A stretch of 63,848 nt of DNA, the filler included, from Pelomyxa schiedti (taxonomy: Eukaryota; Protista; Evosea), in assembly GCA_020536535.1 (NCBI GenBank). It is 7 parts of 7 records of this genome, joined end to end, with 100 filler letters (N's around TTAATTAATTAA, not from the genome) between each part and the next. Parts side by side here need not be neighbours in the genome. Positions count along the whole stretch, not along the records: positions 1 to 27,136 come from JAHLWZ010000584.1; 6 more parts are not named here. One strand, written 5' to 3'. The notes under the pieces were generated by a model. The model was not told where the DNA came from. It worked only from the letters and a program-made list of their open reading frames with translations, and searched no databases. Positions 2,426 to 27,136 of the stretch are shown piece after piece. Numbering within the stretch: the first letter of the stretch is position 1; the number at the start of each line of letters is the position of its first letter. Position numbers and translations under genes: made by a program.

Positions 2426-4602
2426 TTATTCCTCATTTTTCTTCTTTCTCAATGACAGTAACACAGCCAAAAACTGATCGAGTTCTTTGTACACATGCTT
2501 GGGAACATGCTTACGGTTGTGGGTGTTCCTACAATAGGATGAATCACACCGACGGTATGTTTGTCTGCAAGCGGAACATATGTTCCGTGCCACCCAGAAG
2601 AATGCGGCATTCTTCCACTGCGGGGTGGGTGGGTTGATGAGTTGTGGAAATGAAGGAAAATAATTGGTGGAAGGAACCTTGGTGGAGTCACTGTCAAGGA
2701 GACGGGTACTGAGAATAAATTGATCCTGGATTTTTTTTTCCCATTTCATGCCGGAATTCAATAAGGCCCTCTGAGGAGAAAATGAGTGAAGAGCAAAAGA
2801 AAGAGACTGCAAAAATCGAAACAGAAACCTTCCACAGGGAGTTGGATCGGCCCATTTGATACCTCGACATTAATATTTATGTTTGCATGCAAGTGATTGA
2901 ACAAGGGGATGTACTCACCAAAATTTTGAAGTCTGTTGTATCCTCCCCAGTGATTTGATATCAAGCAGCTCCAGAACTCCGGTAATTTCAGCCTTGTACT
3001 GAATCATCATGGAGGTGATGGATTCGCTCACACTGGGTATGAATGGGATAAGAAAAAGGAAATGGAGTGGAAATTCGCACATAAATTCTGCCGCTGGGAC
3101 TAAATAATCTGACCACAGAGGCATAGAGGCACAGAGTTCAGAGCACGGAGATACAGGAAGAGAGGCCTTGTATACAGAGAGCGATTTTAGATGTTCTTCC
3201 CATGACCCTAGAAATGGTTAATAAATAGGCGCTGTATTCGGCAAAAGTACCATCGAGGTAACTTGCAAGTGAAAAAACTGGGTCATTGTTGCTCCAATCT
3301 CTGCAAAATTCAGGGGTGAGGATACCACCACAGCGTGCCATTTCTCGCACCATGTCTCGCTGGTCTGTTACAACCGCAAGGGTCATTGGTCTGGAACCTC
3401 GAGGGAATACTCTGGGAATCATAGTTCCAAATTGCTCACAATACCATTCCATACTCAGTGTACAGAAGACATTTGGGTCTGCACCAAGTCCAAGGAGTTT
3501 TATCACCATGTCAAGTGATTTCTTAGATACGGCAAAGTACAACAGTGTAAGAGTTCCACCGGGGAATGGAACCTGCTGGTTCACCACACCGGAGAGCTTT
3601 GGATGCTCCAGAAGAATAGTTCTATACCGGTCTGGTGCAGTGACCAGCAACTCCACCAATCCTTCACTGAAGACACTGCAGAGATATTCCAATATTGGTT
3701 CCCCAGAAGCTGATGTGACAGCGAGTTTGAGCGGCTTCCTCTCCTCCATTGCAGAAAGCACAAGCTGCTCCCACTTGGGATTGGCTATTGCCATAATTGT
3801 GTCCAACCGGGAACCAATAATTGCAGTTTCAAGCGGGGTCTTCCCGCATTTCGGCGGCCCCGTCATTACGTCGGTATAACAGTTGCTTCCGCCGTCGAGG
3901 CCTTGCAATAGGGAAATCTTCATTGATGTATCGCAAGACGAAAGTATCAAGTCGGCACACTTGTATTGGTTGTCTTGTGCACAAAGATGAAGCACATTGA
4001 AGTTGAAGAAGTGACCTGCGCCTCTACCTTTGTAACAGTGCATAGTATCAGCATGCCACTCCGTCAGCAAGCATTCCACAATATCAGTGTGTCCATTTCT
4101 GACTGCAATGATAAGTGGCGTGTAACCGCAGGAGGCTTCATCCACCAGCCACTTCATGGCATCGGCTTTCGTTGCCATCGTGTTGTAGGGTGGTCTGGAA
4201 GCCCATGTGTTGAGAATCACATTCATTTCGGCCAGGTGCCCCAGATGGGCGCAAACATGTATCACATTATCGTATCTGGGATGCATTAAGTAGGAGTACC
4301 AATGACAGTAAATAATATCATCAATACTATTATAGTTACTAGGCATTCAATTTCGTTAACAATGGCTTTTTGTACCTTTCCTTTGCAGAAACTTGGCGTT
4401 CTTGGCCAACAGGAACAGATTCAGCGGCGGCCCTCACTTTGGCAACGTCGCCCTTGACACATGCCCTCATGAGCCTGGCCCATAATGGCCCCTCTGATGC
4501 CTCGAGTGACTTGATGCTTTCGAGAGTGCGACGTTTGAACCTCTCGGCCTCCGACTCGGGGATCATAGGCTCACATTGGCTGGAGGAGAAATGTTGGCCC
4601 AT
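2426..4602 (-). CDS. Ankyrin-repeat / F-box-like / Cys-His tail protein, paralog 1 (multi-exon)
   Basis: MGQHFS start. Ankyrin motifs GYTPLIIAVRNGH, GKTPLETAI and LLGLGADPN. Spliced F-box-like EITGVLELLDIKSLGRIQQTSKFW|YQMGRSNSLWK. Tail WKNAAFFWVARNICSACRQTYRRCDSSYCRNTH. Confidence 0.8.
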
Positions 4603-4812: not shown

Positions 4813-5642
4813 ATGAAACCCATCACTGCACTTTCAGATTCGTCGAAACTAATGGCGTCGTCGATTGAGACGATGTGCATGACGATACCGGACGACGTAG
4901 GCAAGTTGCTAGTGTGCGAAAAGGTACAGTTGCACCAAGTGACGTGGGACCCCAAATTGGCAGCCTCGGGACTGGACTTTGATCGCCAGAACACAGTCGT
5001 GGAACACACGTCACCAGAATTAATCTACCGGACGGCACTGGCTAATGAGGGGTGGAATTCAGGCTGCCACTTTTGGTCCCTGCAAATTGTATGCTATGTG
5101 TTACCTTATACACCATGGTTTCTTTGTTCCCCTCTGCAGCCAAGCTTTTGGTTTAAAAAATTCCAAAACAGCTTAATTCTGGGAAGAACAATTGCATTAT
5201 GGTTGGAGTGTGTGATGAGGACTCAGTAGAGAGAAGAACGTTTTTGGACAACTACTTCCCAGGGATGACTGGTGAAGGCCTCTCATACTACGGAAACAAT
5301 GGGCACATTTACATGCCATCCGCCAAGCACCTGATGCATGGGAGGGGAATGAAAACCATGGTTTATGGCAACTGCAATTTTGGCCCAGCATTCCGCTCTG
5401 GGGCAGAAGTTGGAGTTCTGTTGAACCTGAATCCTTCCCAAGAGAGTTGTACATTCTACCTCAACGGCACAAAGGTGTAGATTCCTGCGAAACTTTCCTT
5501 CTTAGTTCTAATTCCTTGCATTTAGGTTGGTGCAGTTGGAAGTGAAGGTCTTCCTGCAGCTCGCTTATGCAAATATTTCCCATCCCTTGCCACATTTGAA
5601 CCTGGTCAGAGAGTCTTTTCTTTGCCACCAGATGAACCCTAA
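4813..5642 (+). CDS. Stand-alone SPRY/B30.2-like domain protein (3 exons)
   Basis: VTWDP...GWNSGCHFWSLQI|..MVGVCD..GLSYYGNNG..FRSGAEVGVLLNL..CTFYLNGTK|VG..YFPSL; GT-AG introns. Confidence 0.8.
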
Positions 5643-5865: not shown

Positions 5866-8483
5866 TCATTCCTCATGGAGAGAGTTGTAGAGGGTGGAAA
5901 TTGATTGAAGTTGTGGTGAAACGGCCCTTGGCCGGTGCTGTGAAGCAACACAAACCACTTCTTCACAACTGCGGTAGTACTGGGCACACCGGCAACAGAA
6001 ACACCGTGACAGCCAGAAGAAGCAAACCCGCTTCCACTGTGAATGAAGTCAGTGAACAGTAAAATGGAATAATAACTTTTGGAAGCATTACCTTTGTGGT
6101 GGGTTCTTGGTCTAGGGTTGTAATCATCCGGTATAGTTTTGTCTTGGTTGCTTGATTCCATGTTGCGCTCGTGTTCAACAGTGCCCACTACAATTAATTT
6201 GTGTAAATTACTAATAAAAGTATCCAAATCACCTTCCACAACGAATTGGATCGTCCGGCATGGTACCTTAATGAAAAAGTAAAAATTTGAAAGTATTATG
6301 CAATGTAATAACCAAATTCTTGAGGTTTGTTGTATTCGGCCCAGTGCCTGTATATCTAAGAAGTCCAGGACTCCACTGATTTCGGTATTGTACCGCGCCA
6401 TCATCATGGTGATCGATTCATTAATCCTATTGAGCAAATTAGGGGAACTGTGTTGTCGCAATAGAGGGACCTTACGGAATTTTGGCAGTTACAAGCTTGT
6501 CATCTCCAAAAGATAGAGAAGCACAAAGTTCGGTGTGCTCTTCGGGAAATGGAAGAGTTTGGGTATAACTTATATTGGCCAGGACATGTTCTTGCCAGGA
6601 CCCTGTATCAATATCAGTGCCGCTTCAGAATGAACGTGCTACAAACCATCAAGGTAAGTCGCCACTGAAAAGTGGGGATCACCCCTGGACCAGTCCTGAC
6701 AAAATTCAGGAGGAAGAACACCTCCATGGTTTGACATTGCTTGCACTATTTGTTTCCGGTCTGTTATCAGTGCGATCACCATTGGCGTTAGAATTATTTT
6801 CGAAATGTTAATGCCACCCTGTCTCAGTTGTCCAATTGGGAGATCACGCCCATCTTCCCACTCTGGCCACTTTTCACACACTGTATTTGGGCTCGCTCCA
6901 AGCGATAGGAGCCTGTTCACCAGCTCCTTTTCACCTGAGACTGCCACCGCAAACAGTGGTGTTGTGTGTGGCTTACATTCAGTGAACCGGTTTAATACCG
7001 AAGGGAATTCCGGGTGCTGCAAAATTGTTTCTCTGTAGTTCCTCCTCCCATATACGAATGCATCCTCCAGCCCGTTGCTGAACACGCTACAGAGCCAGTG
7101 AAACACGTATTCTGGAGCATTTCTGTGCCTACGTATAGGTGCCTTGGCGTCCAGAGCTATTACCACACCCGGGCCCCACCTTGGGTGAGTCAGCATTTCT
7201 GCAAATCCCATGCTTCCAGAAGAAAGTGCCAGGTCTAGAACAGTCCCAACTCCCTCATTCCCCACAATCCCAACAAGTTCCGCCCTCTGGAGCTCATTGC
7301 ACCTGCTAAGAATCTCAGAAGCCCCTGCGGAATCATTCTTTGCTGCACATATATGTAAAACGGTGTACCCATTGTAGTCTTGGCTGTACTGACAGCATAC
7401 CATTATGTCAGCCTTCCACCGGTCCATAAGACATATAGCCACTTCCCATTGATCCTCTTTCGCGGCCATCATCAATCCAGTAAAACCTTGTTTCCTAGAA
7501 ACAGCATTCACCAGCCACTTCACTTCTTCCGCCTGCCGGTTACTTTTCTTCTTGTTTTCCTCTTCTCCAGTCTGGCTCTGCGATTCTCCACTTCCAGACT
7601 CTCTACTGGAACTGTAAGACTCAGTTACGAGTGCTACTTCATTTTTTTTTTACTAATTACTTTTTTTATTTATTGTGTAATAGGAATAACTTACGCTACG
7701 AATAAGTTCAAGCCAAACATACAACCCAAGAAAAAATAAACAACAAAGCAAACAACAAGGGACCCTATATATCTATCTATCNNNNNNNNNNNNNNNNNNN
7801 NNNNNNNNNNNNNNNNNNNNNNNNNNNNNNNNNNNNNNNNNNNNNNNNNNNNNNNNNNNNNNNNNNNNNNNNNNNNNNNNNTTTTTTTATTTATTGTGTA
7901 ATAGGAATAACTTACGCTACGAATAAGTTCAAGCCAAACATACAACCCAAGAAAAAATAAACAACAAAGCAAACAACAAGGGACCCTATATATCTATCTA
8001 TCACACACACCAATTAGTATCCCCATCATCGGCGACATCAGGATCGCCACTGGCGATGTTGCAGTCGGCCCATGTCTCCAGCACCGCGTCCAGCTCGGCC
8101 ACGTGCCCCAGCCCCGCGCACATGTGCACCACGCTCAGCCACTTCGCCCCCGAGTCCCACACCTGCTGCCACCGCCCCTTGCTCCCTCCCCCTCCCCCTC
8201 CTCCTCCCTCTGCCGCTGCCCCCCTGGCCTTGGCGACTGCGCGGGCGGCGGCGGCGGGGCCGGCGGCCCGGACCGCGGCACGGAGGATGGGCTTCTTCTT
8301 GTCCGGGGAGCGGGACAGGACCTTGGCGTACCTGGCCTTGAGCGCCTTGTATCGCTCCGGCCTGGGCGAACGTGTGGTCCCGGTCGGTGTTGTGGTTGCT
8401 GCTGCTGCTGGTGGTGGCGGCGAGGACGGCGACGGCGACCTTGCTGCTGTTATGGGTCTGGCCGACTCGACTGCGTTGCCCAT
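5866..8483 (-). CDS. Ankyrin-repeat / F-box-like / Cys-His tail protein, paralog 2 (multi-exon; gap lies in an intron)
   Basis: MGNAVES start; VVHMCAGLGH, GYTVLHICA, LLSLGASPN; EISGVLDFLDIQALGRIQQTSRIW|YHAGRSNSLWK; WKRVCFFWLSRCFCCRCAQYYRSCEEVVC..H. Confidence 0.8.
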
Positions 8484-8550: not shown

Positions 8551-9317
8551 CTAGTGACCACCCCGTGGGAAGTAAACAATTACATTATTTCGTGGAGGAG
8601 GAGGAGGAACTGCCAGGGATATAACCGAGGCACCAAGTTCATATAGTGATACAGATGGGAAGTATGTCCTTCCTGTGAGCACATCGGCTCCTGCTGCTGT
8701 TCCGACCTACGTTGATGGTTTAGGAATTGTAAGAAAAGGCCAAAGAACAGAGAAGATTCGGCGACTAGTGCATACCCTTGTTCCATTCAAGAAGAATGTG
8801 CAGGTTCTGTGTGTCATGTTGAGAAGAACTCCAACTTCTGATCCTGTTCCAAACACCGGTCCAAATCCTCCATAGCCTCCCAGTTTGTATGTGTAGCCAT
8901 TTGCACCGTAGTATGATACACCATCGGTCTTTAGCCCAGGGTAATGGCTGACCGGGAACATTCCACCAAATGAAGCATCGCACACTCCAATCATGATGTA
9001 CTTGCTTGGCCCTCCATCCAACTGTGTGTTGTGTTTTCGTCAACAAAGTCAAATATATATAATAATATTATATATATTTTTGCACGCACCACTTTCAAAG
9101 ACCAGTAATGGCTGCCGTCAAAGAATCCCTCATCTCCCAGAACTGTCTTGTGTGTCAACGTTCCGATGTTCTGTGTCACGAGTGTGTTTGCCTGGTCGAA
9201 GGCAATTCCTGGCGCAGCGCGGGCTGGGTCCCACGTGACGCAGTGATAATGGAGGTTGCCTACAGTGGCGAGGTCAGGAGGAATCCGCATGACTTCGCTT
9301 GGTTGTGCTGGCCGCAT
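8551..9317 (-). CDS. Stand-alone SPRY/B30.2-like domain protein, paralog of 4813-5642
   Basis: VTWDP..EGFFDGSHYWSLKV|..IMIGVCD..GVSYYGANG..FGTGSEVGVLLNM..CTFFLNGTR|VG..YFPSVSLY; same intron positions as the first copy; 5' end uncertain. Confidence 0.78.
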
Positions 9318-9553
9318 TCCTGTATTGGTGTCTTTGTTATGAGTGTATTTACAGCGGCTGTTATGTTTTCTTGAATCGTAATGAGTTGGAAAGGAAAAGG
9401 AACGAAAAGTACGTAAAGTAGTCAAGTTGGTACTGTTGTGCACGTCTCTTTAGCGTCTTTTTTTTTCCTTCTTGTTGATTTGGGCGAAGTGTTCGGCCGA
9501 AAAAAAAAAGCACCAGTGCCGTAGCAAAAACGACACATCAACCCACATTTCAA

Positions 9554-9923: not shown

Positions 9924-11915
9924 TCATGGGAGGGTAGTGAAGGTGACAGTGATTGTGCGGAGTTCAGGGGGATTGCACCTTGGTTGGTGGCATTTCTTTG
10001 TGTTGTGATGGTGCAACTTGCACTTAGTGCCCTCACGGTTCTGGTAAAAAGTGTGGCACCTTGTGCAGAAGCACTTGGAGAGCCAGAAGAATCCAACGTT
10101 TTTCCACTGCAATTGCCATTAGAGAAAGGCTTGCATAGTGATAGAGACATGCCTTGGTTGTTGTGTCTTGCTCAAGGATTTCAACACCAAGAAGAAGCTT
10201 TTTTTGAACTTTTCTGTGCCATGACACACTTGTATTAAGCAAAGCCAACTGCCAGTGGTGAACAGACATTAAAATGAAAATGAAGTACACACCTTCCAAG
10301 TGGAATTTGACTGTGCAGCCCCGTACCTGCGCAATTTTAGATAATAAATACACCAGTTTTGAAGCAAAGACTACCAAAATCTTGATGTCTGTTGGAGTCT
10401 ACCAAGAGATCTGATGTCAAGAAGCTCCAAGACTCTGGACATTTCATTGTTAAACTGTACCATAAAAGAGGTGATTGACAGTCCAGTCCTTTTTCCCATT
10501 AGTTGGCAATGAATGGATGGCCACGAGTAAAACATACACAATCTGAGAAGGATGTAACGTGTGTGGAAATGACAGTGGTTTGTACAACTCCCAATGTTCA
10601 CTCTGAGTTGGGAGTGAATCCTCGTAGTCTTCCTTTGCCTTAGAATGCTCTTCCCAGGAGCCTTTTTGAAGGTCAGTTCAGACTGATCAGTTTTTCAGAA
10701 CGGAAACCAACCATCAAGGAAAGTGCCGAGCGAGAACATGGAATCACCTTTCCCCCAAATATGACAAAAGTGGGAAGGTAATTCACCTCCACACTGTGAC
10801 ATCTCTTGCGCCAATCTTCTCTGATTTGTCCCCACTGCAAGAACAAGTGGGGTTATAACACTCTTGGGGAGAGCCAGTGAATGCCGCAGTTCGTGTGCTG
10901 CACGGCACAGTGTGTTTGGGTCCGCACCAAGAGAGAGGAGCTTCAGTGCCAGCCTTTTCTTTCTTTTCAATACAGTAACAAACAGGCATGTTGTATGGGG
11001 CTTTTTTTCAGTAAGAACATTGATGTGCTGTGGGAACTCTTTGTGGTCCAAGATGAAATCACGGTTGTGCTTGGAACCATGAACAAAAGCGTCCTGCAGC
11101 CCTTTGCTGAACCCCACCTCGCACAGGCAACTGAATACCTCTGGCATTTTTTTGCAGTGCCTTCTGAGTGGGGCCCTCTCATCCATTGCCTTGAGGACAG
11201 CTGGCCCCCACTTTGGATTCGTGATCATCCTCACAAAGTCCAAGTAATCACTCTCCAGAGCCACATCAAGAGCTGTGCCAACACCCTCATCAGCCTGGAA
11301 CCCAGCCAATTCTGCTCTCTGTGAGTCACTCCTGCAGGCTGCCAATATCACCTCAGCACAGTCAATCCTCCTCATCTCAGCACACAGGTGCAGAACAGTA
11401 AATCCATTATATCTCCCTGCTTGCTCTCCTGTGCAAAAATACGTCACATCAGCATTGCAACTGCTCACAAGGTATTTCAAAATTCCACAGTGTCCTCCCA
11501 TAACAGCCTCCATTACAGCATTGAATCCGTTCTTATTTTTTCCTGCAGAACTCACCAGCCACCTCACACTCTCAATCTTATTCTTAGGAGCAACAGGAGA
11601 ACTTGCAACTGCAGAATAATTGTAAGCGGTTCTGATCGGCTCACTCGAATTAGTGATAGAACCAGCACTTTGCCAGCAACTCAGAATTGCCTCTACTCCC
11701 TCCATTTGGCCATTTGCAGCGCACCACTGCACCACAGTCAGGTAGTAATCGGTGCCCATTTGAAAAGAGAATTGGCCCATGTGCAGCGCCCCATTGTGGG
11801 ATCCTCTTAGCACGCTCTCCTCGATGAACTCTGCTGTCGGCATCCGGGCGCCCTGTGCGATCAGCAGTTGGTCTATCCTCCGTTGCCTCTCAGCATTTGA
11901 CGGCACTGTGCCCAT
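9924..11915 (-). CDS. Ankyrin-repeat / F-box-like / Cys-His tail protein, paralog 3
   Basis: MGTVPS start; GFNAVMEAVMGGH, GFTVLHLCA, LLSLGADPN; EMSRVLELLDIRSLGRLQQTSRFW|YGAAQSNSTWK; WKNVGFFWLSKCFCTRCHTFY..C..HHH. Confidence 0.82.
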
Positions 11916-12190: not shown

Positions 12191-13609
12191 TCAGAGAACG
12201 TGACGAAGTACTTCCTTGATGAGGCCTTGGAAGCTGGCACCCCTCTTTTTGGCTTCTATAAGAACATCCTCTTCAGTCAGCACTTCATTGCAAATTCCGG
12301 CAGCCATGTTGCAGACACAGGCAATGCCAAGAACCTCCATTCCGCAATGCCGGGCAGCAATTGCCTAATGCAGGAAAATTCTATGAGAACAAAGTACATA
12401 GGGGAAGTGGGAACAGGAAGGAAGCCAACCTCAGTTACTGTGCTCATTCCAACTGTGTCTGCGCCTAGTATGCGGGCCATTCTTATCTCCGCGGGAGTTT
12501 CATATGTGGGGCCGAGCATGCACATGTAAACTCCGGACTTGAGTACATCTTGTAGGCCTAGTGCCGCTGCAGCCGTTCTAACCACTTGTTGCAACCGCGG
12601 TGTGTAGGTGGTCCCCATGTCAGGGAATCTTGGGCCATACTCGTTGATGTTTGGTCCAACTGGTTGTGGTGTTAGCAAGGTGTACGTAAGGAAAGGATTC
12701 TTACCTAAGGGGTTTTTCCCTGTCATATTGATATGATCCGATAGCATCATAAGGTCGCCTCTCTTGTAGCTTGTGTTAACAGCACCGCATGCGTTGGTAA
12801 CAATCAGGACTCTAACTCCTAGATGCTTCATAACCCGGGTCTAAAAAAGGGTAAGGTAATCGGACTTAATTAAATTTGAGTTTTACAAATATAATTTGTC
12901 TTATTATTGTAACTAATTCAGGCAAATTCACACCGGCATTGCTACAGTCGATGGTTCATATCCCTCATACAAGTGAACGCGTCCTTGCATACATACGACC
13001 CTGACACCACATAGTGTGCCAAGTACCAACTTTCCAGCATGGCCGGGTGCTGTAGAAACAGGGAACCCAGGAATTGACGAGTAAGGAATGATTCCACCAG
13101 NNNNNNNNNNNNNNNNNNNNNNNNNNNNNNNNNNNNNNNNNNNNNNNNNNNNNNNNNNNNNNNNNNNNNNNNNNNNNNNNNNNNNNNNNNNNNNNNNNNN
13201 CGTCCTTGCATACATACGACCCTGACACCACATAGTGTGCCAAGTACCAACTTTCCAGCATGGCCGGGTGCTGTAGAAACAGGGAACCCAGGAATTGACG
13301 AGTAAGGAATGATTCCACCAGTGGACGTGTCAACTTCCAGTGCCAAATCCCCAAGGCCTGAACCCAAGATAATTCCCACCTTTCAATGTTAAAATGGGGA
13401 AAAAAACCCAAAAGTATAAGATAAATCACTACATTTTGAACGCGACTAGCACCAAAACCGTTTGGGTTTAAAAGGGGGGGTGCGATTATTTTATAAATAA
13501 TTAAAACGAAACGACGCACGGGGTAGGGTTCGGTGAAGTGGATGGTGGCCTTGATGTGTTCCGCAGCGCGGATGATATCAGCAGCACTCCTCTGTATCAC
13601 TTCTTGCAT
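12191..13609 (-). CDS. PNP: Purine nucleoside phosphorylase (trimeric family), multi-exon
   Basis: GIILGSGLG, IPGFPVSTAPGHAGKL, MQGRVHLYEGY, VTNACG, DHIN, GPRFPDM, GPTYETPAE, GADTVGMST. Confidence 0.95.
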
Positions 13610-13833
13610 TCTCAACTTGCTTCTTCTTGTTGTGCTTTTTTGATTTTTTGTTTGTTTTCGCCCGTTCAAAAAGAACCGGAAGTTTTTTCTGCTAAGAAAG
13701 CTGGAACCGAGAGGTTGCTGGTCCTGGAATCTTAGCGTGAGAAGAATCGATCCCATTGAGGACACTCTTGTTGGGTACCAGACCAGACAGGTTTGTTTCC
13801 GATGAGGGTCATTTGATCAAAAACTTTGGTGTG

Positions 13834-14773
13834 ATGAGCAGGGGACCGGTGTCATCAGGGGGTGCTGGCCCCAAGTTGGCTTCGTCGTCTCCACCTTTTG
13901 AATTTCCGTCGTATTACACAAGGCAGCCTTTTTTCACGTAGTTCCCCTGCTTGTCCTCTAAACTCTCTTTTTTTTTTTTGGACCCTGCAGGCAACTAAAC
14001 ATTGTGCCTCGTATGTTGTAGAGTGCAACCAGTGCTGAACACGAGGAAGAAACAAAGCCAACTTTGGGGTGATTTGATTGTTTCGTACTGCCGGCACAAC
14101 AAAATCTACGAGCTCAACCTCACTGAGGCTGCCACTTCCCCGTTATTCTGTAATACTACAATTAACAGTATGTAATTCCTACTATGGAATCAAAAAAAAA
14201 AACCTATACATGTGTTACCTGATTTAAAAAATCCAACTACCGGCACTAGGAAAATTGTCAATGGATGGGATAGTAACATTTATTGATGATCTTGTACAGC
14301 AGGGTGTGTTAGTAACATAATATTCTGAAAAATAGCCGTTGTACCTAATTTTTACTGACCTGTAATTTCGGGAGGCAGGGAATGCAGAGTGGGTGGATGC
14401 CAGAGAAAAGAACCGGGTCAACATTTTCTGGAGGAAGATTGATCATTGGGCCACACTGATATACAAATGGGTGTGTGAATACTATTTTTTTTTTCCTTTT
14501 CCTTTCACAATCTTAACATTCACAAAGGTGAGTGACATGGGAATGCTTGGTAATGTCCTCACTGTTTGGGAAATCCAAAACGGGGAGAACTCACAAGGAC
14601 AAGGTATACAGTAATTCCACTCCCGTACTCACTTTCGAAAATACACAGAGTTCTTCGAGTTGGATACCCGAGTGCTAATGAAGGCCCTTGGCGTACTAGA
14701 GCGTGAGGGTAAAGCTCAAGTTTTCTCCGGCACTTCTGATGAAAACCTTGGTGTCAAATTCTTTGCTCCCTAA
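13834..14773 (+). CDS. VPS25: ESCRT-II subunit Vps25, multi-exon
   Basis: FEFPSYYTRQPFFT|VQPVLNTRKKQSQLWGDLIVSYC...NIFWRKIDHWATLIYKW...EFFELDTRVLMKALGVLEREGKAQVF...GVKFF. Confidence 0.9.
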
Positions 14774-17374: not shown

Positions 17375-20290
17375 ATGAACATTGGGGAGCGGGGAGGAGG
17401 GGGCAGTCGTTGCTGCGTGTGCCGTTGTTTCCTCTTCCCTCCTTCTGGTGGGGCTGTGGCAGGGTTGGTGGAGCCTATGTGCGGGCACCCGGTGTGCGGC
17501 CTGTGTGGGGACGCCATAGTGACCTTTTCGCGTGACATCCCCGCCGCCTCTTCGTCCTCCTCTTCCTTTTCGTCCTCGTCCACGTCCTCGACCTCGTCCT
17601 CATTCGCCGCTGTGCCACCAACGCCTACTACCCCGTCGCGGGATTTTGCAACTACCAACAACAGCGGTGGTTGTGGTGGCGATGGGGATGGCGCGTGCGA
17701 GTGTGTATTGTCATCAGTTCCGGCACCGCCGCCGCCAAGCGAGCCAGCGGTTGCTGCTGACATCACGATGTGGTGCTCGGCGTGTGGGTGTACAACGGGA
17801 GCTACGCTGAGGCCGGCGCCGGATCGAACTCGCAAAACTGACCCGCCTTCTAGCGGTGCCGGTGAGAATCTCGCTATGGCAGTGTCACGACCGCAGGCGG
17901 CTGCGGTCGTGGTGAAGAAAGAAAGGGGGGATGGGTCATCGTCATCATCACCAGGCGATGCAAGCTTAATCCCAACACAAACGAACCCAAAGAGGAGGAG
18001 GGTGGCTGTGGCTGTGTGGTGCAGTATGTGCTGTGCGATGGGGGTTGCGGAAGTTCCGGCGAAGTACTGGTGCCAAGACTGCACGAGGACATCAGGCGGT
18101 GGTGCGTCGCTGTTCTTCTGTGATGCCTGTTGGAGAAAGGCTCACTGGACACCTTTGTTGATGTCCCATGCAAAGTTGGATCCTGTCTCTGCTATGGTTC
18201 CTTCTCCTGTCTCCAACAGTATCCATCACCGCGATAATAATAAATTCTATATATATAATAAATATATATAATATTAAGTATAATTAAAAACAATAATAAC
18301 GACACTGCAGTGAAGGCGTGCGGAATTCACCACCTCCCTCTCGATGTATTCTGTGAAACTGATGGGGACTTCATTTGCGCCATCTGCTCATTTTCTTCTC
18401 ACAAGGTCGTTTTCACCTCTTACTTGGAAAATTGCAAACTTTCATTTTTTTGTTTTTTTTTTGGAAACAAAGGGGCACAGTGTCGGAACTGTAGAAGATT
18501 TTTATATGAAAAGGAAACCAAGTGCGCAAACATTTTTGGACCAACTCTCACAAATGGAGGTGACTCTTGATACTTTGGTTGCGGCAATCAAATTGGAGAG
18601 TGTCAGCATGAACCAGGTCAGTTCCCACTTTTCTTTCCTCCTTAATCACAAAAAACTTTCCAGGTTCACAGCCAGTTTGAGGGGGATGTCCGCAAAGAAT
18701 TCAGTGTTCTGATTTCAAGATTGCAAGAAAGACAAGAGGAATTAATTTCCACATCCCAGTCAATTTCATGTTCCAAAGGTTGTTTTGCACTTTCGTGCTT
18801 GGAACTCATCCTCGCATACAGCTTGTGCCCTGTCAAGGCAACTTGAGTGTGTTTCTGCCGGTCTCTCACACATTGCGGAGTATAAATCCAAGTGTGAGTC
18901 AGTACTGAGAAGTGATGATCCCTACCAAATCATTGAATTGTATGACTCGATCCCTGGAATCCTCAGAGTGCTTCCTTCAAACACTGGCCAGAGCAGCCAA
19001 CTTGAATGTGAATGTGAACCAAACCACCTCTCACCATGCGCAAAAACCGGAATGTTGCGCTGCAGCACCGGTGATACTGAAATGTTCAAGTCGAAAATTC
19101 CGCAGATGTGTAACATTTCCTATGGTGTGCATTGCTGACAAATTCATTTGAATTACACTTACCTTAATAACAGTGCCGGTCATCACCGCCATCACAGAAG
19201 AAGCGATAGCAAGCACAACCGGAGGAGCTGTTGTGAAATTGAGTGGATGCTGGCCCACAACAGCAATCAACAAGGACATTCAAGTTCTGCTTGGGGAATC
19301 AGTCTGCCCGAACGTGAGTGTCAAAACTCCTGGCTCAGTCTTGACCTTCACGGTGCCAGAGGGTGTTGGATGTGATCTCCCTGTGTATCTCCGTGTCTTT
19401 GGTGTCACTGCTGACAGACCAAATGACACCAGGTTCTCATACGAAGGTGTGTTCATCCAGTTTTATTTTATTGTTGATCTGACTACAACCAGGACCAAAG
19501 ATTCAGGGTATGTCCAAAGTTGCACACCCGGGTACCCCTGTCCGAATTGAAGGAACTGGGTTTGGCACATTGCCAAGTGCAATCAGTATTTCCATCTTTT
19601 GTATGTACCGACCGTTCAACACTGATTTTACTTACGTGTAATCCAGCCCACGGTGTTACATGCAGCAATATTGCAGTAGTACACCCACACACAAGTATCA
19701 CATGCACAGTACAAGGGCAGGATAGGAAATTACTTTCTGCACCACTGACCCTCACAGTTGGTAGACAACATACAACATCCACTGTACACTTTGGAATGGA
19801 GTGGGACACACAGAACTGTGGGAACCTCCTTGTTATATCTGGTGACAGGAAAACTGTGTGCAAGCCAGACAAGGCCGGCTTTGGCTTCCTCCAGTCCGCA
19901 GTCACAGCCCTCGCGCCGCTCATTGGTGACCAAGTGTTTGAATGGAGGTTATCAATATCTGGGCTGCAGAACCCCTATGGATCACAGCTGGTGTTCTTTG
20001 GAGTGATAGCCAAGCCATTTGATCAGAACCAATCGCAGGGGTATTGCCAAATGTATGGCTGGTCAACACTAGGAGAGAAAATGCCCACTGGCGGCCTTGC
20101 CATCATTGACCACAAGGCAGTGCTCAAGGCAGAGAAGGTCACACTGAGGTATGTGCCATCCACACTCACTCTCACTGCAACATGGCACCTGCACGAAAAC
20201 AAAACAACGGTGTTGACCAAAGTGCCAAGGGGGTTGTTCCCTGTTGTCATTGCCGCAGACGGAGGCAACACCATCAAGATAAAACTGTAA
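17375..20290 (+). CDS. TRIM-like protein 1: split RING, B-box1, B-box2, coiled coil, IPT/TIG, SPRY-like
   Basis: CCVC..CGHPVCGLC..WCSAC; CSMC..AKYWCQDC..FCDACWRKAH..H; CGIHHLPLDVFCETDGDFICAIC..H; RLQERQEEL; PVITAI..GGAVVKLSG..VLTFTVPEGVG; EWD..FEWRLSI..VFFGV..YGWS..LFPVV. Confidence 0.82.
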
Positions 20291-20323
20291 AAGAATTTTT
20301 GCCAGACAGGAACCGGCACCGAA

Positions 20324-23300
20324 ATGCATCATCAGGGGAGTGGTAACCACGCCAGACGCACGCCGCCATCATCGCCATCATCGCCATCATCGCCATCATC
20401 GCCATCATCGCCATCATCGCCATCATCGCCAACAACAACAACCAAGCTGCTCCGCTGCTGCGTGTGCCGAGTTGCCTTCCCTCTGACGATTCCAGGCAGC
20501 GACTCTGCGCGTGGTGGTGGTGGTGATGATGCACCACCCTCGGGGGCGTACGACCACCAGGCCCAGCAGCAGCAGCAGCTGTCGTGCGGGCACGCGGTGT
20601 GCGGGGAGTGCCGGGGCTGCGCCGCCACGTTCTCCCGCGACATCCCTGCCGCCTGCTCCTCCTCCTCCTCTTCCTCCTCCTCCGCATTGCCGCGGCCACC
20701 ACCACCATCACCATCACCGGTTGTGGCTTCCTCGTCGTCGGCAGCGGCGGCGTCGGTTCCCCCTCCGGCAGCATCAGCAGTTTGTAGTGGCAGTGGTGAG
20801 GGGATAGTGTTGGTGTGGTGCGGAGTGTGTGGTTGCACCCGCGAATTAAGCTCCGTCCTGCCATCACCACCAAAACAGGAAAAAGAGGAACCGGTTGAAA
20901 AACAAACGCAGAAGCAGCAGCGGGAGGAGGAGGAGGAGGAGGCTGTGCGTCATGATGGTGGCAGCGGTGGCGGTGGTGTGATGGTGGTGAAGCGAGAGGA
21001 GAAGGAGGGGGATGTGCTAGAATCGGATGAGAACCCAACACCAACAAACCCAAAGAGGAGGCGAATGAGGATGAATGCGGCAGCAGATGTGAGTGCGACG
21101 TGTGTGATGTGCCGGTCGGCTGGGAATACTGGGGTTCCGGCCAAGTTCAGGTGTGATGAGTGCACAAGGGCGTCGGGTGGTGACACGCCAATGTTGTTCT
21201 GTGATTTGTGTTGGTCCAAGGCCCACTGGGCCACCTGGTTGATGTCTCATGCCAAGTCCGATCCTCTCTGTTTGAATCCAGCTCAAGCAACAGGCATTTT
21301 ATTGTAGAATGTTTATAAATTTATAAAATCACCTGTACCTTTATACTTATTTGCCCTTATGTTTAATATGTAGACTAATACACCATTCTAATTTTTTTCA
21401 AAATTAGAATTTTTTTTTTTAACACTAAATGGTTGTTTAACTGCCTATTTCAAAAACAGACACGAGGATGTGTGAAACTCACTGCCAGCCTCTAGATATT
21501 TACTGTGAAACAGATGGTGCTTTCATCTGCTCAAAATGCTCTCTTTCCCTTCATACCGGACACGACACTGCAGCGGTGGACACCCTGTATCGCGAAAAGA
21601 AACCCACCGCAAAGGAGTTTATGCTGCAGCTTTCACAAGTGGAGCTTGATTTGAGTTCTCTGGCTGGATGCATCAAGTCTGAAAATAACAATATCCAACA
21701 GGTGCTTCTCAATTGTAACGTTGAAGGGAATTAACACCAAAAACACACAGTTTCACTCCACGTTTGAGGATAAGATTCGCAAAGAATTCAGTGTTCTGAT
21801 TTCAAGACTGCAAGAAAGACAAGAGGAATTAATCTCCACATCCCAGTCAATTTCCCACTCCAAGGGTGTGTGGACCCCCAGATTCCCCCTCCCCACTCTT
21901 TATGATACTTATACTTAACACAGCTTGTGCGTTGTCAAAGCAGCTTGAAAGTGTTTCTGCCGGGCTCTCACGAATTGAGAAGTACAAATACAAGTTTGAG
22001 CCAATCCTGAAAGCTGGAGATCCATTCAAAGTCATTGAGCTGTGTGAATCTGTTCCCGGAATCCTGAAGGTAAATTCACCTTCACTGTTCAACAAAAACC
22101 GCCGACGCACAAACAGCAGCTTGAAGTATGCAAACCGGCACATCTGTCACCATGCACCACATTAAGTTGTTGCACAGATGAGACAGAACTCTTCAAGTCA
22201 ATGATACCACAGATGTGCTCCATCTCTCCGGGTGTGTGTTTTAAATTCCATTGTGCCTTCCACTCAAAATCAAATCAAATCAAATAAACAGGACCAGTAA
22301 TCAACAACGTCAAGGAGGAAACAATTACAGCCAGTGCAGACACTGGTGACCGAGTAGTTACACTGAGTGGGTGCTGGCCAACAGCCGCAACAAACAAGGA
22401 CATTCAAGTTTTGATTGGGGATTCAGTGTGCCAAAATGTGAACATCACAACGCCTGGCTCCGTTTTGAAGTTCACAGTTTCGGAGGGGATTGGCTCAGAT
22501 CTCCCTGTGTCTCTCAGTGTCTTTGGTGTCACTGCTGACAGACCAAATGACACCAGGTTCTCATTCAAAGGTGTGTCCTGCTGCATAAATCCCTGTTTTG
22601 ATTATTTGGTAACAATTCAAAGGACCACAGATTAAACATATACTTGGAGTTACACAGCTTGGAGGGAGGATTACAATTGGTGGAACTGGGTTTGGCACTT
22701 CACCAAGTGCAATCACTGTTGCAATAGATGGCATGTGTGCCCATGCAACCCACCCAAATTTTGACTGGAGTTCTAATGGAACAGCCAGATGTTAATTGCA
22801 GTGCAGTTGAAGTGAGCTGCCCACACACTCAAATAAAATGTACTGTTCCAGAACAAACCAAAAGGGAAGCCGTGTTGACTCTCACTGTTGGTGGCCAGAA
22901 AGCCAGGCCCACAACCATCTCTTTTGACTGGGGTTTGTGATTCACACTTTAAGTCATTTTAACACTCCAAATAGGTGGAGGAATGAAATGGGATAAAACC
23001 AGCCTTGGCCACAACTTGACTCTTATTAGTAGTTACTCCATCAGGAGTGAGGGGACCAAAGCAATGACGAAGCAAACCACAGGGATGGCAACCACACCGC
23101 TAAGTGGTGACTTTGTGTACTGCTGGGGCCTCACCATTGACGACCTTGCAAGAGATGATGACGACGGAGATGACACCAGCAATCCAAAGAATCAGGCACC
23201 CTGGACCAAGCGGGTTCTGTATGGTATTGCAGCCAAGCCGTTCCCCCAGGACAGTGTCACGCCCTCTATGTACCTGTGTGGGTGGTCCACAAAGGCAGAA

Positions 23301-23513
23301 AAGTACCACTTGCCCAAGGCAATACCCGCATTCACAGCAAGAGGGGAGAGGGAGGTGGTGTCTTTCCGGTATGATGCACGTGCCCAATTACTCACAGTAA
23401 CATGGCCACGCCACAACAACACCACAGCGGTGGTGGGCAACGTCCCAAGGGGATTGTATCCTGTTGTGTCCCTCACAGCTACCAACACTTCTGCAAGTTT
23501 TGAGAATCATTAG
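20324..23513 (+). CDS. TRIM-like protein 2 (tandem paralog)
   Basis: CCVC..CGHAVCGEC..WCGVC; CVMC..AKFRCDEC..FCDLCWSKAH; CETHCQPLDIYCETDGAFICSKC; coiled coil; two TIG-like units; KWD..YCWGLTI..GWST..LYPVVSL. Confidence 0.82.
20366..20430 (+). repeat. 9-bp coding tandem repeat (GCCATCATC)x~7
   Basis: Directly visible; encodes (PSS)n. Confidence 0.9.
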
Positions 23514-23639: not shown

Positions 23640-25024
23640 GCCTTGTTGACTTGTACCGTTTTGGGTTTCTGAAATAATTTTGTGAACATTTTTGATAGTA
23701 AGGTGTGATGTGGTGGGTAGGAATACAATACATACGGGCCGCGGTGCATTTCTGAAGGGGAAAGTTGTCCAAAACCCCTACCACCCATGAAAAAGCCTTC
23801 AAGAGATGGATGAACTTGCTGAGGCCGGGAAGGTTCATCACACTGTAGGATTCCGGCGTCAATTTCTTGTCTGACAAACTCATGGGCAGTCTTCAGTCTG
23901 AAGAAGGGATATGAGTGTTGCAATGCGACGCGATTTTTCTCGCACTTACTGGGATTGAAAACATTCAGTGCGAATTAGAACTTGGGATGCGGTACTTTGA
24001 ATCATATTTGTCCTTTCATCAATGGTTGCAAGTAGTTTATCAGAGGCATCAACCCTTGGGGTTGATGAGAGTAAGTATAGAGTGTGGTTGTTACTTACCA
24101 CTGTGAAAGAGTCGCCCGAATAGCGGATAAATCGAGAATCGATGAACCACTGGTACCTTCGACATCCGATGAAGTAGAGGCAGTAGGAGCGAGGTCCCTG
24201 CCAATGGCATAGTGCACCTCCAAATTCGCGGCGGCTTGATCCATTTTTGCGGCAATAATTCCTTGGTAAATACTGGTCATGACAATATCGGCAAGCTGGC
24301 GGGTGTCAGAAAGACCCAGTGCCTGAAGCAACTCCGCGTAAGGGATAACCTTTCAGGGTAAGAACAACACACAGATTAATACATTAACAAGTGATAGTTA
24401 GGAGTCTGCTCACTCTTCTTTTCTCTGCCAACGAAATTAAAGTAAGCTGTCTCAGTTTGGTCATTTGGTTCTGGGTCAGTGCTCCATAAGTATCATCGGC
24501 TGTTTATATACGCACACCAACAAGTGTGGTTGAGTGAGATTGCAGTGAATCATCAAACAGAGATCATCATCACTAAGGTGCGTTGTTGTGCACTATTACC
24601 TTTGTAATCCTTGAATGTCTTAAACGCAAACAATTTCAGCTTTTCCTGGAGTACGAGCGGTGCCTGTTTGTGCATCAGTTAGCGCAAGGAATGCAGGATT
24701 TGTAAAACACACGGATTTAATCTGAGGAAGAGCAAGCAGCTCGGAGAACACAAATAGATTTGGGTCATCCAGTGCGTCTTCTACAACTTTGGCGATCACA
24801 GCTGTGTGAATGTAAGAAAAACACTCACATACGATCATATCATATGCTAAAGAGTGAAAACACGCGCGGACGGGTGCCGTACCTTGGAAATCGGGGTCGG
24901 AAGGAGACAGTCGAGACACGGCAACGACGAAGTGCGACAGCGATAAATCACCACAACTGCCCCCACTATCCCCCAGCGAGTTGTTGTTGTTGACAGTGCC
25001 ACAACTGCTTATGTTGCTACTCAT
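23640..25024 (-). CDS. CSN7: PCI-domain protein, COP9 signalosome subunit 7-like
   Basis: VVEDALDDPNLFVFSELLALPQIK; KLRQLTLISLA; IPYAELLQAL; IYQGIIAAKMDQ..LEVHYAIGRDL..LSQW. 3' end approximate. Confidence 0.82.
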
Positions 25025-25346
25025 TCCCCAGCGGCTGTACTGTCCGTGTTGTTGGCACAAGGATACTTCCAGATCTACTCTTGAAAAAGATTGAAGAGTG
25101 ATTCTGGCATGACCGCAGGGGAATAATGTGTCCCAGTGAGTGCACACTTGACGACAGCGCTTGGGGAATGAGTAGCAACACTCACTGTTTTCCGATTCAG
25201 ACATATTTCTGAGTGTAAGTTTTTTCAACATCAACGATTCATGATGGCCTCCACGTGTCGCTTCCCCATCCCCCCAAGACCCTTTAAACCGTCAAAATTT
25301 CTCACAAAACTACTACAACAACAACAACAACAAACAACGTCTCTCA

Positions 25347-26364
25347 ATGAGCAGTGCCTCGTCATCATCAACAGCAGCAACCACCACGACCACGTACCTG
25401 AGCACTGGGGACCTCGCGGCCAACTTGGGGCGTGGGTCGTGGGTGGTGCTGGACGTGAGGTGGATCCACGGCGACCCCCTGAAAGGCCGTGCCGACTTCC
25501 TGGAATCACACATCGAGGGAGCAGTGTTCGTGCACCTCGTCGAGGACGCGACTGGTGAGGTCGTACCCGGTGTCACTGGAAGGAACCCCCTCCCATCACT
25601 CGAAAAGGCCAACAAGGTTTGTCCATCACCAAAACTTTATTTATGTCTGTCTGGAATTCATGATAAATGACATTTTATGTATCACCTCATAAATTCCTAA
25701 CTTATTATGTATTACTTGTATGTATTACTTGTATGTATCACTTCATAAATTCCTAACTTCCAACAACAAGGTTTTTTCCAGGGCTGGAATAAACCCGGGA
25801 TCGACCGTGGTTGTTTATGACAGCATGGGAGGGGCATTTGCAGGCAGGGTGTGGTGGATTCTCAAGTGGCTTCAGCACGATGGCCCAGTTTACCTTCTCG
25901 AGGGGGGATTCAAGAAATGGAGCCGGGAAGGCCTCCCAACATCATCAGGCGATGAGCCACCAAAGGCCCTCGGCACGTTCGTGGGCAGGCCATGTGCCGA
26001 AATGTGTGTCGGGGCAGAGGAAGTGATGGCAGCGCTGAAGGAACCAGAATCCTGGAAGCTCATCGACACCCGCCCAGCAGAGAGGTTCACAGGGCAGAGC
26101 GAGCCGGTGGACCCAGTTGCCGGACACATCCCTGGGTTCATCAACGTGCCGTTCCAGCAGAACATCAACACAACCACAGGGATGCCACTCACACGCGAGG
26201 AGCTTCGGGCCAAGTACGAGGCTGTGTTTGGGGGAGTGCCAGTGGACAGGGTGATAATGTCATGTTCAGCTGGGATTGTGGTTGGGCTGTGTGTTCTTTC
26301 TGTTGTGCACTCTGGCCTTGGGATGCCCAAGATGTACCCTGGTTCGTGGAGTGATTGGATCACT
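25347..26364 (+). CDS. Double-domain sulfurtransferase (SseA/MPST/TST family); 3' end runs into a gap
   Basis: Intron 25617-25770. GI..GSTVVVYD, AGRVWWIL, LEGGFKKW, LIDTRPAERFTG.SEP.D..AGHIPG, active-site SCSAGIV, YPGSWSDW. Confidence 0.92.
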
Positions 26365-26464
26365 NNNNNNNNNNNNNNNNNNNNNNNNNNNNNNNNNNNN
26401 NNNNNNNNNNNNNNNNNNNNNNNNNNNNNNNNNNNNNNNNNNNNNNNNNNNNNNNNNNNNNNNN

Positions 26465-27136
26465 CGTCCTTGCATACATACGACCCTGACACCACATAGT
26501 GTGCCAAGTACCAACTTTCCAGCATGGCCGGGTGCTGTAGAAACAGGGAACCCAGGAATTGACGAGTAAGGAATGATTCCACCAGCGGACGTGTCAACTT
26601 CCAGTGCCAAATCCCCAAGGCCTGAACCCAAGATAATTCCCACCTTTCAATGTTAAAATGGGGAAAAAAAACCAAAAGTATAAGATAAATTACTACATTT
26701 TGAAAGCGACTAGCACCAGGGGTGCGATTATTTCAATAATTAAAACGAAACGACGCACGGGGTAGGGTTCGGTGAAGTGGATGGTGGCCTTGATGTGTTC
26801 CGCAGCGCGGATGATATCGGCAGCACTCCTCTGTATCACTTCTTGCATTCTCAACTTGCTTCTTCTTGTTGTGCTTTTTTGATTTTTTCTTTGTTTTCGC
26901 CCGTTCAAAAAGAACAGGAAGTTTATTCTGCGAAGAAAGCTGGAACCGAGACGTTGCTGGTCCTGGAATCTTAGCGTGAGAAGAATCGATCCCATTGAGG
27001 ACACTCTTGTTGGGTACCAGACAGGTTTGTTTCCGATGAGGGTCATTTGATCAAAAACTTTGGTGTGATGAGCAGGGGACCGGTGTCATCAGGGGGTGCT
27101 GGCCCCAAGTTGGCTTCGTCGTCTCCACCTTTTGAA
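26465..27136. repeat. Second, slightly diverged copy of the PNP 5' exons and VPS25 start (duplicate of ~13201-13902)
   Basis: Near-identical sequence with a few SNPs and indels (e.g. DTSAGG vs DTSTGG). Confidence 0.9.

Follow-up and report, generated by a model that had tools for sequence, protein, structure and literature searches.

Does an amoeba encode complete tripartite-motif (TRIM) proteins and, if so, how are they related to those of animals and what might they do in the cell? The window that we analysed is a stretch of 63,848 nucleotides (nt) from the assembly of Pelomyxa schiedti (Archamoebae), an anaerobic, free-living organism, and the question is raised by two genes that occupy positions 17375 to 23513 of it, on the plus strand of contig C584. 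An original prediction, made from this DNA alone, had read there a RING, B-box1, B-box2, coiled coil, TIG-like repeats and a SPRY-like domain, in that order and in each of two tandem genes, and had taken the genes for an independently expanded family of a phagotrophic protist. All six elements do occur in both genes in that order, and the host is indeed a phagotrophic protist, an amoebozoan. We consider it quite probable that the genes belong to a TRIM-type (RING–B-box–coiled-coil, RBCC) E3 ubiquitin ligase family with paralog-specific targets; the architecture and the homology to TRIMs can be seen in the genes, while catalysis and target binding are inferred from what animal TRIMs do.

The two genes are intact and intron-bearing and stand head-to-tail. 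Their exon models were derived by eye from a three-frame read and the DNA, and were then checked by script:

17375 to 20290, plus strand: gene 1, TRIM-like, 8 exons, 841 codons
17375-18218, 18311-18405, 18473-18616, 18664-18778, 18822-19124, 19174-19446, 19493-19600 and 19647-20290, plus strand: exons of gene 1
20324 to 23513, plus strand: gene 2, TRIM-like, 9 exons, 879 codons, the donor of exon 1 being tentative
20324-21269, 21460-21701, 21751-21865, 21924-22069, 22117-22231, 22292-22570, 22623-22736, 22789-22932 and 22975-23513, plus strand: exons of gene 2

By the script check, all introns in both genes are GT-AG and 42-190 nt long, their phases agree, and stops are terminal only. What looked like frameshifts, in the second IPT/TIG domain of gene 1 and near 22070 and 22737 in gene 2, proved to be small introns; in all, gene 2 has three apparent frame changes, each accounted for by a GT-AG intron of 47-52 nt. 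With seven introns in gene 1 and eight in gene 2, both genes are intron-dense, in line with the 7.43 introns per gene of the P. schiedti genome (PMC8887013).

The NCBI model of gene 1 (KAH3760786.1, 'hypothetical protein Pelo_7394', P0005 in our numbering) corresponds to only the last 624 amino acids of ours and agrees with it at every exon junction. It begins at an internal methionine within B-box1 and leaves out 217 codons (17375-18025), those of the RING included; the public model of gene 1 is therefore without the RING and without the first cysteine of B-box1. The RING and B-box1 are nevertheless encoded on one open exon, and neither a stop nor a plausible start lies between segments. KAH3760786.1 joins B-box1 through SPRY, and the NCBI models P0036 and P0037 (814 amino acids) of two paralogs join RING through SPRY. 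Together with the phases and the GT-AG junctions, this points to a single polypeptide with the RING–B-box1–B-box2–coiled-coil order. Exons were searched singly, and whole-protein work used the NCBI models (P0005 and P0035-P0037).

Both genes carry the domain order RING, B-box1, B-box2, coiled coil, two IPT/TIG domains and SPRY, at the following positions:

17411 to 17785, plus strand: gene 1 RING (C3HC4), with its N-terminal half at 17411-17542, an insert at 17543-17770 and its C-terminal half at 17771-17785
18020 to 18169, plus strand: gene 1 B-box1, C-x2-C-x13-C-x2-C-x12-C-x2-C-x4-H-x7-H
18311 to 18481, plus strand: gene 1 B-box2, C-x2-H-x7-C-x7-C-x2-C-x4-H-x2-H, split by the intron 18406-18472
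18482 to 19124, plus strand: gene 1 coiled coil and linker, exons 3-5
19174 to 19446, plus strand: gene 1 IPT/TIG 1, exon 6, the most conserved exon of the family
19493 to 19780, plus strand: gene 1 IPT/TIG 2, exon 7 and the start of exon 8, with the intron 19601-19646
19781 to 20287, plus strand: gene 1 predicted SPRY/B30.2-fold domain, 169 amino acids
20456 to 20830, plus strand: gene 2 RING, with inserts in both loops
21101 to 21250, plus strand: gene 2 B-box1
21468 to 21572, plus strand: gene 2 B-box2
21573 to 22231, plus strand: gene 2 coiled coil and linker, exons 2-5, with 39-86% identity to the gene 1 coiled-coil exons
22292 to 22570, plus strand: gene 2 IPT/TIG 1, 71% identical to that of gene 1
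22623 to 22932, plus strand: gene 2 IPT/TIG 2, with the intron 22737-22788 (Pfam TIG E-value 0.039 for the second exon alone)
22975 to 23510, plus strand: gene 2 predicted SPRY-fold domain, one loop of which carries an acidic insert (DDDDGDD)

The relation to animal TRIMs is clearest in the middle of the protein. B-box2 scores 29.7 bits (gene 1) and 36.5 bits (gene 2) with Pfam zf-B_box, for which the cut-off is 24.1. From eight family members we built a profile that covers B-box2 and the 190 residues after it; compared with the sequences in the PDB, it gave TRIMs without exception as its best 27 matches. They include TRIM3 (E-value 9e-12 over 153 residues, query 6-158), TRIM28 (2e-11, 141 residues), TRIM72 (1.6e-10), TRIM29, TRIM5 (4e-9), TRIM41, TRIM39, MID1/2, TRIM21 and XNF7. 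The TRIM3, TRIM28 and TRIM72 alignments extend some 140-150 residues past the start of B-box2, well into the coiled coil, so that by profile alignment the segment directly after B-box2 is homologous to the TRIM coiled coil; Pfam TRIM_CC is matched weakly in one paralog (E-value 0.006). Because the profile finds TRIMs deep into the coiled coil, which is our strongest evidence, we judge from these alignments that the B-box2 and coiled coil of the family are homologous to those of animal TRIMs, and that the family is no chance assembly of common domains.

B-box1 has six cysteines and two histidines as ligands, and these are invariant in 19 of 19 paralogs. An AlphaFold2 model of the RING and B-box1 together (17402-18178, 23 paralog rows) places B-box1 in segment 200-259 with a predicted local distance difference test score (pLDDT) of 85-95. 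In structure comparison with VIA-align, this segment matches the CYLD B-box best (Z 6.5, root-mean-square deviation 1.9 over 52 residues), followed by the COL2/CONSTANS B-box (Z 5.4) and by B-box1 of TRIM28 and the tandem B-boxes of MID1 (Z 4.2). Sequence profiles see less of it. Pfam gives about 16 bits only, to ANCHR-like_BBOX (16.3 in gene 1), and the CYLD B-box is the only meaningful match of the B-box1 profile among PDB sequences (E-value 0.05). The same profile also matched C2H2 zinc-finger repeats, which we rejected as spurious hits to a short Y-x-C-x2-C motif. Taken together, ligands and model indicate that this domain is a B-box1 of the TRIM/RBCC family.

In gene 1 the ligands of the RING are spaced C-x2-C-x19-C-x-H-x2-C-x2-C-x89-C-x2-C; the N-terminal half carries the conserved motif AIVTFSRDIP, the insert is Ser/Pro-rich, and the C-terminal half is a W-C-x2-C motif. 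The eight metal ligands are invariant in 15 of 15 distinct paralogs, as is the tryptophan before the seventh ligand (C7), while the loop inserts, rich in Ser, Pro and Ala, are hypervariable and of very different lengths. The AIVTFSRDIP motif after C6 is largely kept, its phenylalanine being invariant and its proline present in at least 90% of paralogs, and in the paralog with the shortest RING the second loop has 31 residues, within the canonical range. The paralogs also conserve a valine between C1 and C2 and a hydrophobic helix after C6, which, with the tryptophan before C7, we take to be contact positions in canonical interfaces between a RING and a ubiquitin-conjugating enzyme (E2). In the AlphaFold2 model the pLDDT is about 90 for residues 1-45 and 115-140, so that both halves are structured and packed together, and low for the insert. 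VIA-align of residues 1-140 returned mainly RINGs (AO7, Lassa Z, HHARI, RNF144A, TRAF3/6, APC11 and CNOT4) at Z 2.5-3.6, whereas a Foldseek search with the joint model of RING and B-box1 found nothing at E ≤ 0.001. We conclude from the invariance of the ligands and the consistency of the predicted fold that a C3HC4 cross-brace RING is present.

C-terminal to the coiled coil, the protein departs from known TRIMs. The first IPT/TIG domain (TIG1) recurs about 30 times across the genome, with 52-71% identity; that of gene 1 has no Pfam match, and TIG1 resembles the MET receptor IPT domain weakly (E-value 0.21). By hhalign it is related to the second domain (TIG2) with a probability of 94% (E-value 1.3e-7, 76 columns). 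It is through TIG2 that Pfam recognises the IPT/TIG family (TIG, PF01833), at residues 376-450 of KAH3760786.1 with 21.2 bits against a cut-off of 20.9, and in paralogs with 31-58 bits. The terminal domain was called SPRY-like in the original prediction, and here sequence and structure differ. Pfam SPRY (PF00622) had no match at E ≤ 1 in either gene, and a profile of the paralogs had none among PDB sequences. Gene 2 is 34-37% identical to gene 1 over this domain and keeps the family-invariant residues. An AlphaFold2 model computed with 12 paralogs has 12 strands, a pLDDT of 82.5 and a predicted template-modelling score of 0.82, and the best 50 of the 346 Foldseek matches to it in the PDB (E ≤ 0.001) are all SPRY/B30.2 domains. 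These 50 begin at an E-value of 2e-8, with template-modelling (TM) scores of 0.65-0.76 and a probability of 1.0, and cover the whole domain; the structures matched include RanBP9/10, Ash2L, TRIM9, TRIM67, TRIM7, TRIM15, MID2, SPSB and DDX1. A search of the ESM Atlas returned SPRY clusters (TM 0.76-0.79), and a language-model search agrees weakly. The C-terminal domain is therefore predicted to adopt the bent beta-sandwich SPRY/B30.2 fold, which upholds the earlier call.

The resulting arm, TIG-TIG-SPRY, is not seen in animal TRIM classes, and RBCC-TIG-TIG-SPRY is an unreported architecture. Class C-I (MID1/MID2, TRIM9 and TRIM67; RING–B-box1–B-box2–coiled coil–COS–FN3–SPRY) comes near it in having two B-boxes, a coiled coil, one or more beta-sandwich domains and a terminal SPRY; the B30.2 domains of TRIM9, TRIM67 and MID2 are among the structure matches of the Pelomyxa SPRY, and the B-boxes of MID1 match both B-box1 and B-box2. 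However, Pelomyxa has two IPT/TIG domains in place of the COS box and FN3, and the intervening domains match TIG rather than FN3 (a COS box was not looked for). Its RING loops also carry long low-complexity inserts, no sequence similarity could be detected between its SPRY and those of animals, and its host is an amoebozoan. Class C-VII (TRIM2/TRIM3; RBCC–filamin Ig–NHL) contains the best B-box2/coiled-coil match, TRIM3, and likewise has an Ig-like domain after the coiled coil, but that domain is a filamin repeat and not IPT/TIG, the C-terminus consists of NHL repeats in place of a SPRY, and B-box1 is absent.

Class C-IV, with the innate-immunity proteins TRIM5alpha, TRIM21 and TRIM25, shares the RING, B-box2, coiled coil and terminal SPRY, and the B-box2 and coiled coil of TRIM5 are matched at the E-value given above (4e-9); both groups are tandem, lineage-specific expansions. 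In class C-IV, however, SPRY comes right after the coiled-coil linker and most members are without B-box1, whereas in Pelomyxa two TIG domains (about 180 residues) separate coiled coil from SPRY and B-box1 is present. Positive selection is well documented for TRIM5, while our crude count detected none in the Pelomyxa SPRY. Finally, the TRIM37-like genes (RING–B-box–MATH; PMC3503706) also combine a RING and a B-box outside animals, and do so in Amoebozoa, since one is a Dictyostelium gene, but they have one B-box, a MATH domain and neither SPRY nor TIG.

Six-frame searches of the assembly (52.4 Mb, 5337 contigs) showed how far the family extends. The SPRY exon is present about 25 times in full and 10 times in part, the TIG1 exon 34 times and the RING/B-box1 exon more than 25 times, which corresponds to a family of some 25-35 copies in head-to-tail arrays on many contigs. 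Since a few pairs of contigs, 97-99% identical to each other, may represent haplotypes or duplications in the assembly, the number of distinct genes is roughly 25-30. At every locus fetched, in more than 20 copies, the same ten segments follow in the same order with conserved intron phases, at about 3.1 kb per gene, and the distance from the end of SPRY to the first RING cysteine of the next gene is usually 100-260 nt. The genes of the window are divergent members, with 51% nucleotide identity between their SPRY exons, although TIG1 (83% over 223 nt) and one coiled-coil exon (85% over 120 nt) are much closer. The claim that the family is expanded thus holds, in the form of tandem arrays. A small, divergent subfamily on contigs C489 (1-4000), C169 and C1754 has the RING, B-box1, B-box2 and two TIG domains, with a glycine-rich tail (GAGGGGGEHTTGNHGGGGGF) replacing SPRY; its coiled-coil exons are below detection at the threshold used.

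Automatic NCBI product names for some paralogs read 'tripartite motif-containing protein 38/41/50', so the resemblance to TRIMs is registered by software naming, without analysis. Errors are frequent in the public models of the family: RINGs are truncated, neighbours are fused and a spurious 'LRR-ROCO' name occurs. The models need correction before comparative work. Model P0001 (1366 amino acids) fuses two neighbouring family genes. Model P0009 (1330 amino acids, 'LRR-GTPase of the ROCO family') suggested a fusion of leucine-rich repeats (LRRs) to a TRIM, which we rejected as a chimeric model in which the RING region is read out of frame. Its LRR part is a plant-like receptor ectodomain, followed on inspection by eye by a transmembrane-like stretch, and one family member (contig C1372, 1-3500) thus has an LRR receptor-like gene as its immediate upstream neighbour.

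Selection was estimated by pairwise Nei-Gojobori comparison of 15 complete genes, with the synonymous divergence (dS) near saturation for many pairs. The median ratio of non-synonymous divergence (dN) to dS was 0.40 for SPRY, 0.34 for TIG1, 0.27 for coiled-coil exon 2 and 0.21 for B-box1; medians below 0.5 indicate purifying selection in all domains and genes that are maintained, not decaying. In close pairs with similar dS, the dN of SPRY exceeds those of TIG1 and the coiled coil by a factor of 2-4, which makes it the fastest-changing domain. Furthermore, dS disagrees between domains of the same gene pair, in one case 0.18 for SPRY and 2.7 for B-box1, and we read such discordance as a sign that recombination or gene conversion takes place within the arrays. 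A per-codon parsimony count on 21 SPRY sequences, which is crude and ignores recombination, found many negatively selected core sites and a global ratio of about 0.49. No site showed a significant non-synonymous excess, which in so crude a count is absence of evidence only. Hypervariable, indel-rich patches lie at domain residues 10-12, 18-21, 27-37, 63-70, 83-90 and 97-117; it is in these patches of SPRY, and in the disordered inserts of the RING, that variation between paralogs is concentrated.

Is the family then independent of its animal counterparts, as had been proposed? A SPRY profile searched against 1.84 billion representative proteins gave 31 matches at E ≤ 0.001. Among the 13 best, all that we looked up are from Pelomyxa schiedti and the remainder are short unchecked fragments; the next ones looked up, P0016 (E-value 4e-8), P0017, P0019 and P0024 (1.6e-5), come from the euglenids Jenningsia, Entosiphon and Urceolus (EukProt). 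Other matches looked up are unnamed environmental or transcriptome sequences, and none was traced to an animal. Word-index protein searches with KAH3760786.1 and with residues 195-500 of P0037 returned Pelomyxa proteins only, though distant relatives could escape such searches. The RBCC-TIG-TIG-SPRY form was found only in P. schiedti, in searches that were exhaustive at profile level for SPRY only and that do not exclude other Amoebozoa.

The nearest relatives found outside Pelomyxa are RING–B-box–coiled coil–SPRY proteins of phagotrophic euglenids (Jenningsia, Urceolus and Entosiphon; P0016, P0019 and P0033). They are collinear with Pelomyxa P0037 (E-value 6e-8 over B-box1, B-box2 and coiled coil, and 4e-7 over SPRY) and share with Pelomyxa the SPRY motif YGV..KPFD....(M/I)WGWS. 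Pfam recognises in them a RING, a B-box, a weak TRIM_CC and a SPRY at 25.5-26.0 bits, just under the cut-off of 26.3 (Entosiphon). Unlike the Pelomyxa proteins, they have neither TIG domains nor RING inserts, and they represent a well-conserved gene (59-84% identity across samples), known from transcriptomes and metagenomes only, and not a large array. The euglenid collinearity and the homology of B-box2 and coiled coil to animal TRIMs make the word 'independent' too strong: it is the expansion that is lineage-specific, and the architecture may be old. Within the euglenid group, residues ~25-70 of P0019 and P0041-P0043 are a RING minus three cysteines (ICPYSLEIMSDPRTLPCGHTLDYSSL) that Pfam calls a U-box, while Jenningsia and Entosiphon keep C3HC4; this looks like a RING-to-U-box-like transition inside one euglenid orthologous group. 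The Pelomyxa RING profile aligned to a profile of the euglenid RING/U-box by hhalign with a probability of 12.8%.

Literature searches found no published description of such a family, and none pairing 'tripartite motif' with Archamoebae. A survey of TRIM evolution reports only TRIM37-like RING–B-box–MATH genes outside animals; these occur across eukaryotes, one of them in Dictyostelium (Marin 2012, PMC3503706), and TRIM23 has been placed within Metazoa (PMC8358228). The P. schiedti genome paper (PMC8887013) makes no mention of TRIM, B-box or SPRY.

How might such a protein work? By comparison with animal TRIMs, the two RING halves would fold together around the disordered insert and recruit a ubiquitin-charged E2. 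The coiled coil would form an antiparallel dimer, with the B-boxes governing further assembly or self-association, and the TIG-TIG-SPRY arm would bind substrate through the SPRY loops, where most substitutions and indels between paralogs are found. If substrates are bound through these variable loops, each paralog would mark a different target with ubiquitin. The family itself has grown by tandem duplication, and segments are exchanged among its copies.

Several observations weigh against this ligase family as we have drawn it, and most concern the RING. Neither gene of the window has a Pfam RING match; the best RING-type score, 19.8 bits for zf-RING_UBOX in paralog P0036, is below the cut-off, and the PDB sequences matched by the RING profile, although mostly RINGs (RNF4, MAT1, TRIM32, TRIM23 and Tfb3), are sub-significant at E-values of 0.2-0.8. 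The fold matches are weak too, with Z at most 3.6, as is to be expected from a zinc domain of about 50 residues. The second loop of gene 1, at 89 residues, exceeds the canonical limit of 48, and the residue after the last cysteine is usually glycine, where many active RINGs have an arginine or lysine 'linchpin'. Conservation is the one line of support for the RING-bearing 5' part of exon 1. Lastly, the stop of gene 1 (TAA, 20288-20290) is separated from the ATG of gene 2 (20324) by 33 nt, in the same frame; this spacer leaves almost no room for a promoter or untranslated regions and the transcription of gene 2 unexplained, and it suggests overlapping transcription units, read-through or polycistronic transcripts in the arrays. 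From the absent Pfam match, the long disordered inserts in both loops, the glycine and the several euglenid relatives that have lost RING cysteines and become U-box-like, one could argue that the RING is a structural relic without E3 activity, and that the B-boxes, coiled coil and SPRY serve as scaffolds or adaptors in the manner of RING-less or inactive TRIMs. However, the eight ligands have stayed invariant in 15 paralogs while the inserts drifted, the presumed E2-contact residues (valine, hydrophobic helix and tryptophan) are conserved, and AlphaFold packs the two halves together at high confidence; we regard a relic as very unlikely.

It is scarcely conceivable, in our opinion, that the exons come from separate genes, for example a RING/B-box gene and a TIG/SPRY gene, and that the architecture is an artefact of reading across them. 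The NCBI model of gene 1 omits the RING, and other NCBI models of the family are wrong, P0001 fusing two genes and P0009 an LRR gene. On the other side stand the ten-segment order, kept along with the intron phases in more than 20 copies, P0036 and P0037, which unite RING and SPRY, and, in gene 1, the one exon shared by RING and B-box1, the absence of a stop or plausible start between segments and the annotation of B-box1 to SPRY as one protein. We give as little credence to an origin outside Pelomyxa, either as animal contamination of a single-cell assembly or by recent transfer from an animal. A TRIM-like architecture is best known in animals, and the assembly is of amplified single cells, with chimeric artefacts at the ends of this contig. 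However, the strongest SPRY matches are Pelomyxa proteins or unchecked fragments, followed by euglenid proteins, with no looked-up match from an animal; about 30 copies are spread over many contigs of the same assembly; the genes are as rich in introns as the genome; and the artefacts lie outside 17375-23513. On these four grounds, animal contamination was rejected. A further proposal, that of a diversified cell-autonomous surveillance, builds on the TRIM-type ligase and does not exclude it: the SPRY loops of different paralogs would recognise intracellular bacteria, archaea, viruses or phagosome cargo and lead to their tagging with ubiquitin, as in TRIM5, TRIM21 and TRIM25, and the system could extend to the policing of obligate prokaryotic endosymbionts in Pelomyxa. 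The lineage-specific expansion in tandem arrays, the fast evolution of SPRY with its indels and variable patches in a few alignment stretches, the signs of recombination between copies and the LRR receptor-like gene adjoining one copy are all consistent with it, as is a host described in PMC10579272 as a phagotroph with several prokaryotic endosymbionts. Yet no positively selected site was significant, with a global dN/dS of about 0.49 and pairwise medians below 0.5, tandem expansion also occurs in families without a defence role, and the LRR fusion is an annotation chimera. We therefore hold surveillance to be unlikely, if still a real prospect.

The surroundings of the genes were also surveyed. 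Three paralogous ankyrin-repeat genes lie upstream on the minus strand, and housekeeping genes flank the locus (a purine nucleoside phosphorylase family member, PNP_UDP_1, E-value 6e-30; a weak COP9 signalosome subunit 7-like match; and rhodanese-domain proteins):

3138-4346, 6639-7523 and 10695-11915, minus strand: ankyrin-repeat genes, Pfam Ank_2 E-values 1e-9 to 1e-18
4813-5229, plus strand, and 8991-9443, minus strand: short open reading frames resembling by eye the first SPRY strands (VTWDP....G..FD and ...HYWSL/HFWSL), with no Pfam match
12277-13379 and 24620-25234, minus strand, and 891-1538 and 25720-26499, plus strand: housekeeping neighbours

The contig also has artefacts typical of amplified single cells: its last stretch, 26365-27136, repeats 13101-13902 with 97-100% identity, identical copies of 121 nt stand beside 100-N gaps (7661/7882 and 12980/13201), and inverted repeats occur at the contig start (1-172 with 2421-2592, and 906-1048 with 1301-1443). 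All of these assembly artefacts (1-2592, 7661-8002, 12980-13902 and 25363-27136) are outside 17375-23513.

A wider proposal, which we offer as conjecture and think quite unlikely to hold as a whole, is that RING–B-box–coiled-coil–SPRY is an old eukaryotic module, present in Amoebozoa and Euglenozoa by descent or by transfer between protists, and that Pelomyxa made it into a diversified, tandemly arrayed TIG-TIG-SPRY system of intracellular recognition, tagging ingested or resident microbes, possibly its obligate bacterial or archaeal symbionts. If true, TRIM-based cell-autonomous immunity would have a counterpart among protists. What the genes themselves offer is an amoebozoan family that keeps the full RING–B-box1–B-box2–coiled-coil core and ends in SPRY, where PMC3503706 has only the TRIM37-like branch outside animals. 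Should ligase activity and target recognition prove true, the origin of RBCC-SPRY proteins would move well before animals, and the family would provide a tractable non-animal case for the roles of such ligases before animal immunity, as well as a candidate for how a symbiont-bearing phagotroph distinguishes its residents from its food.

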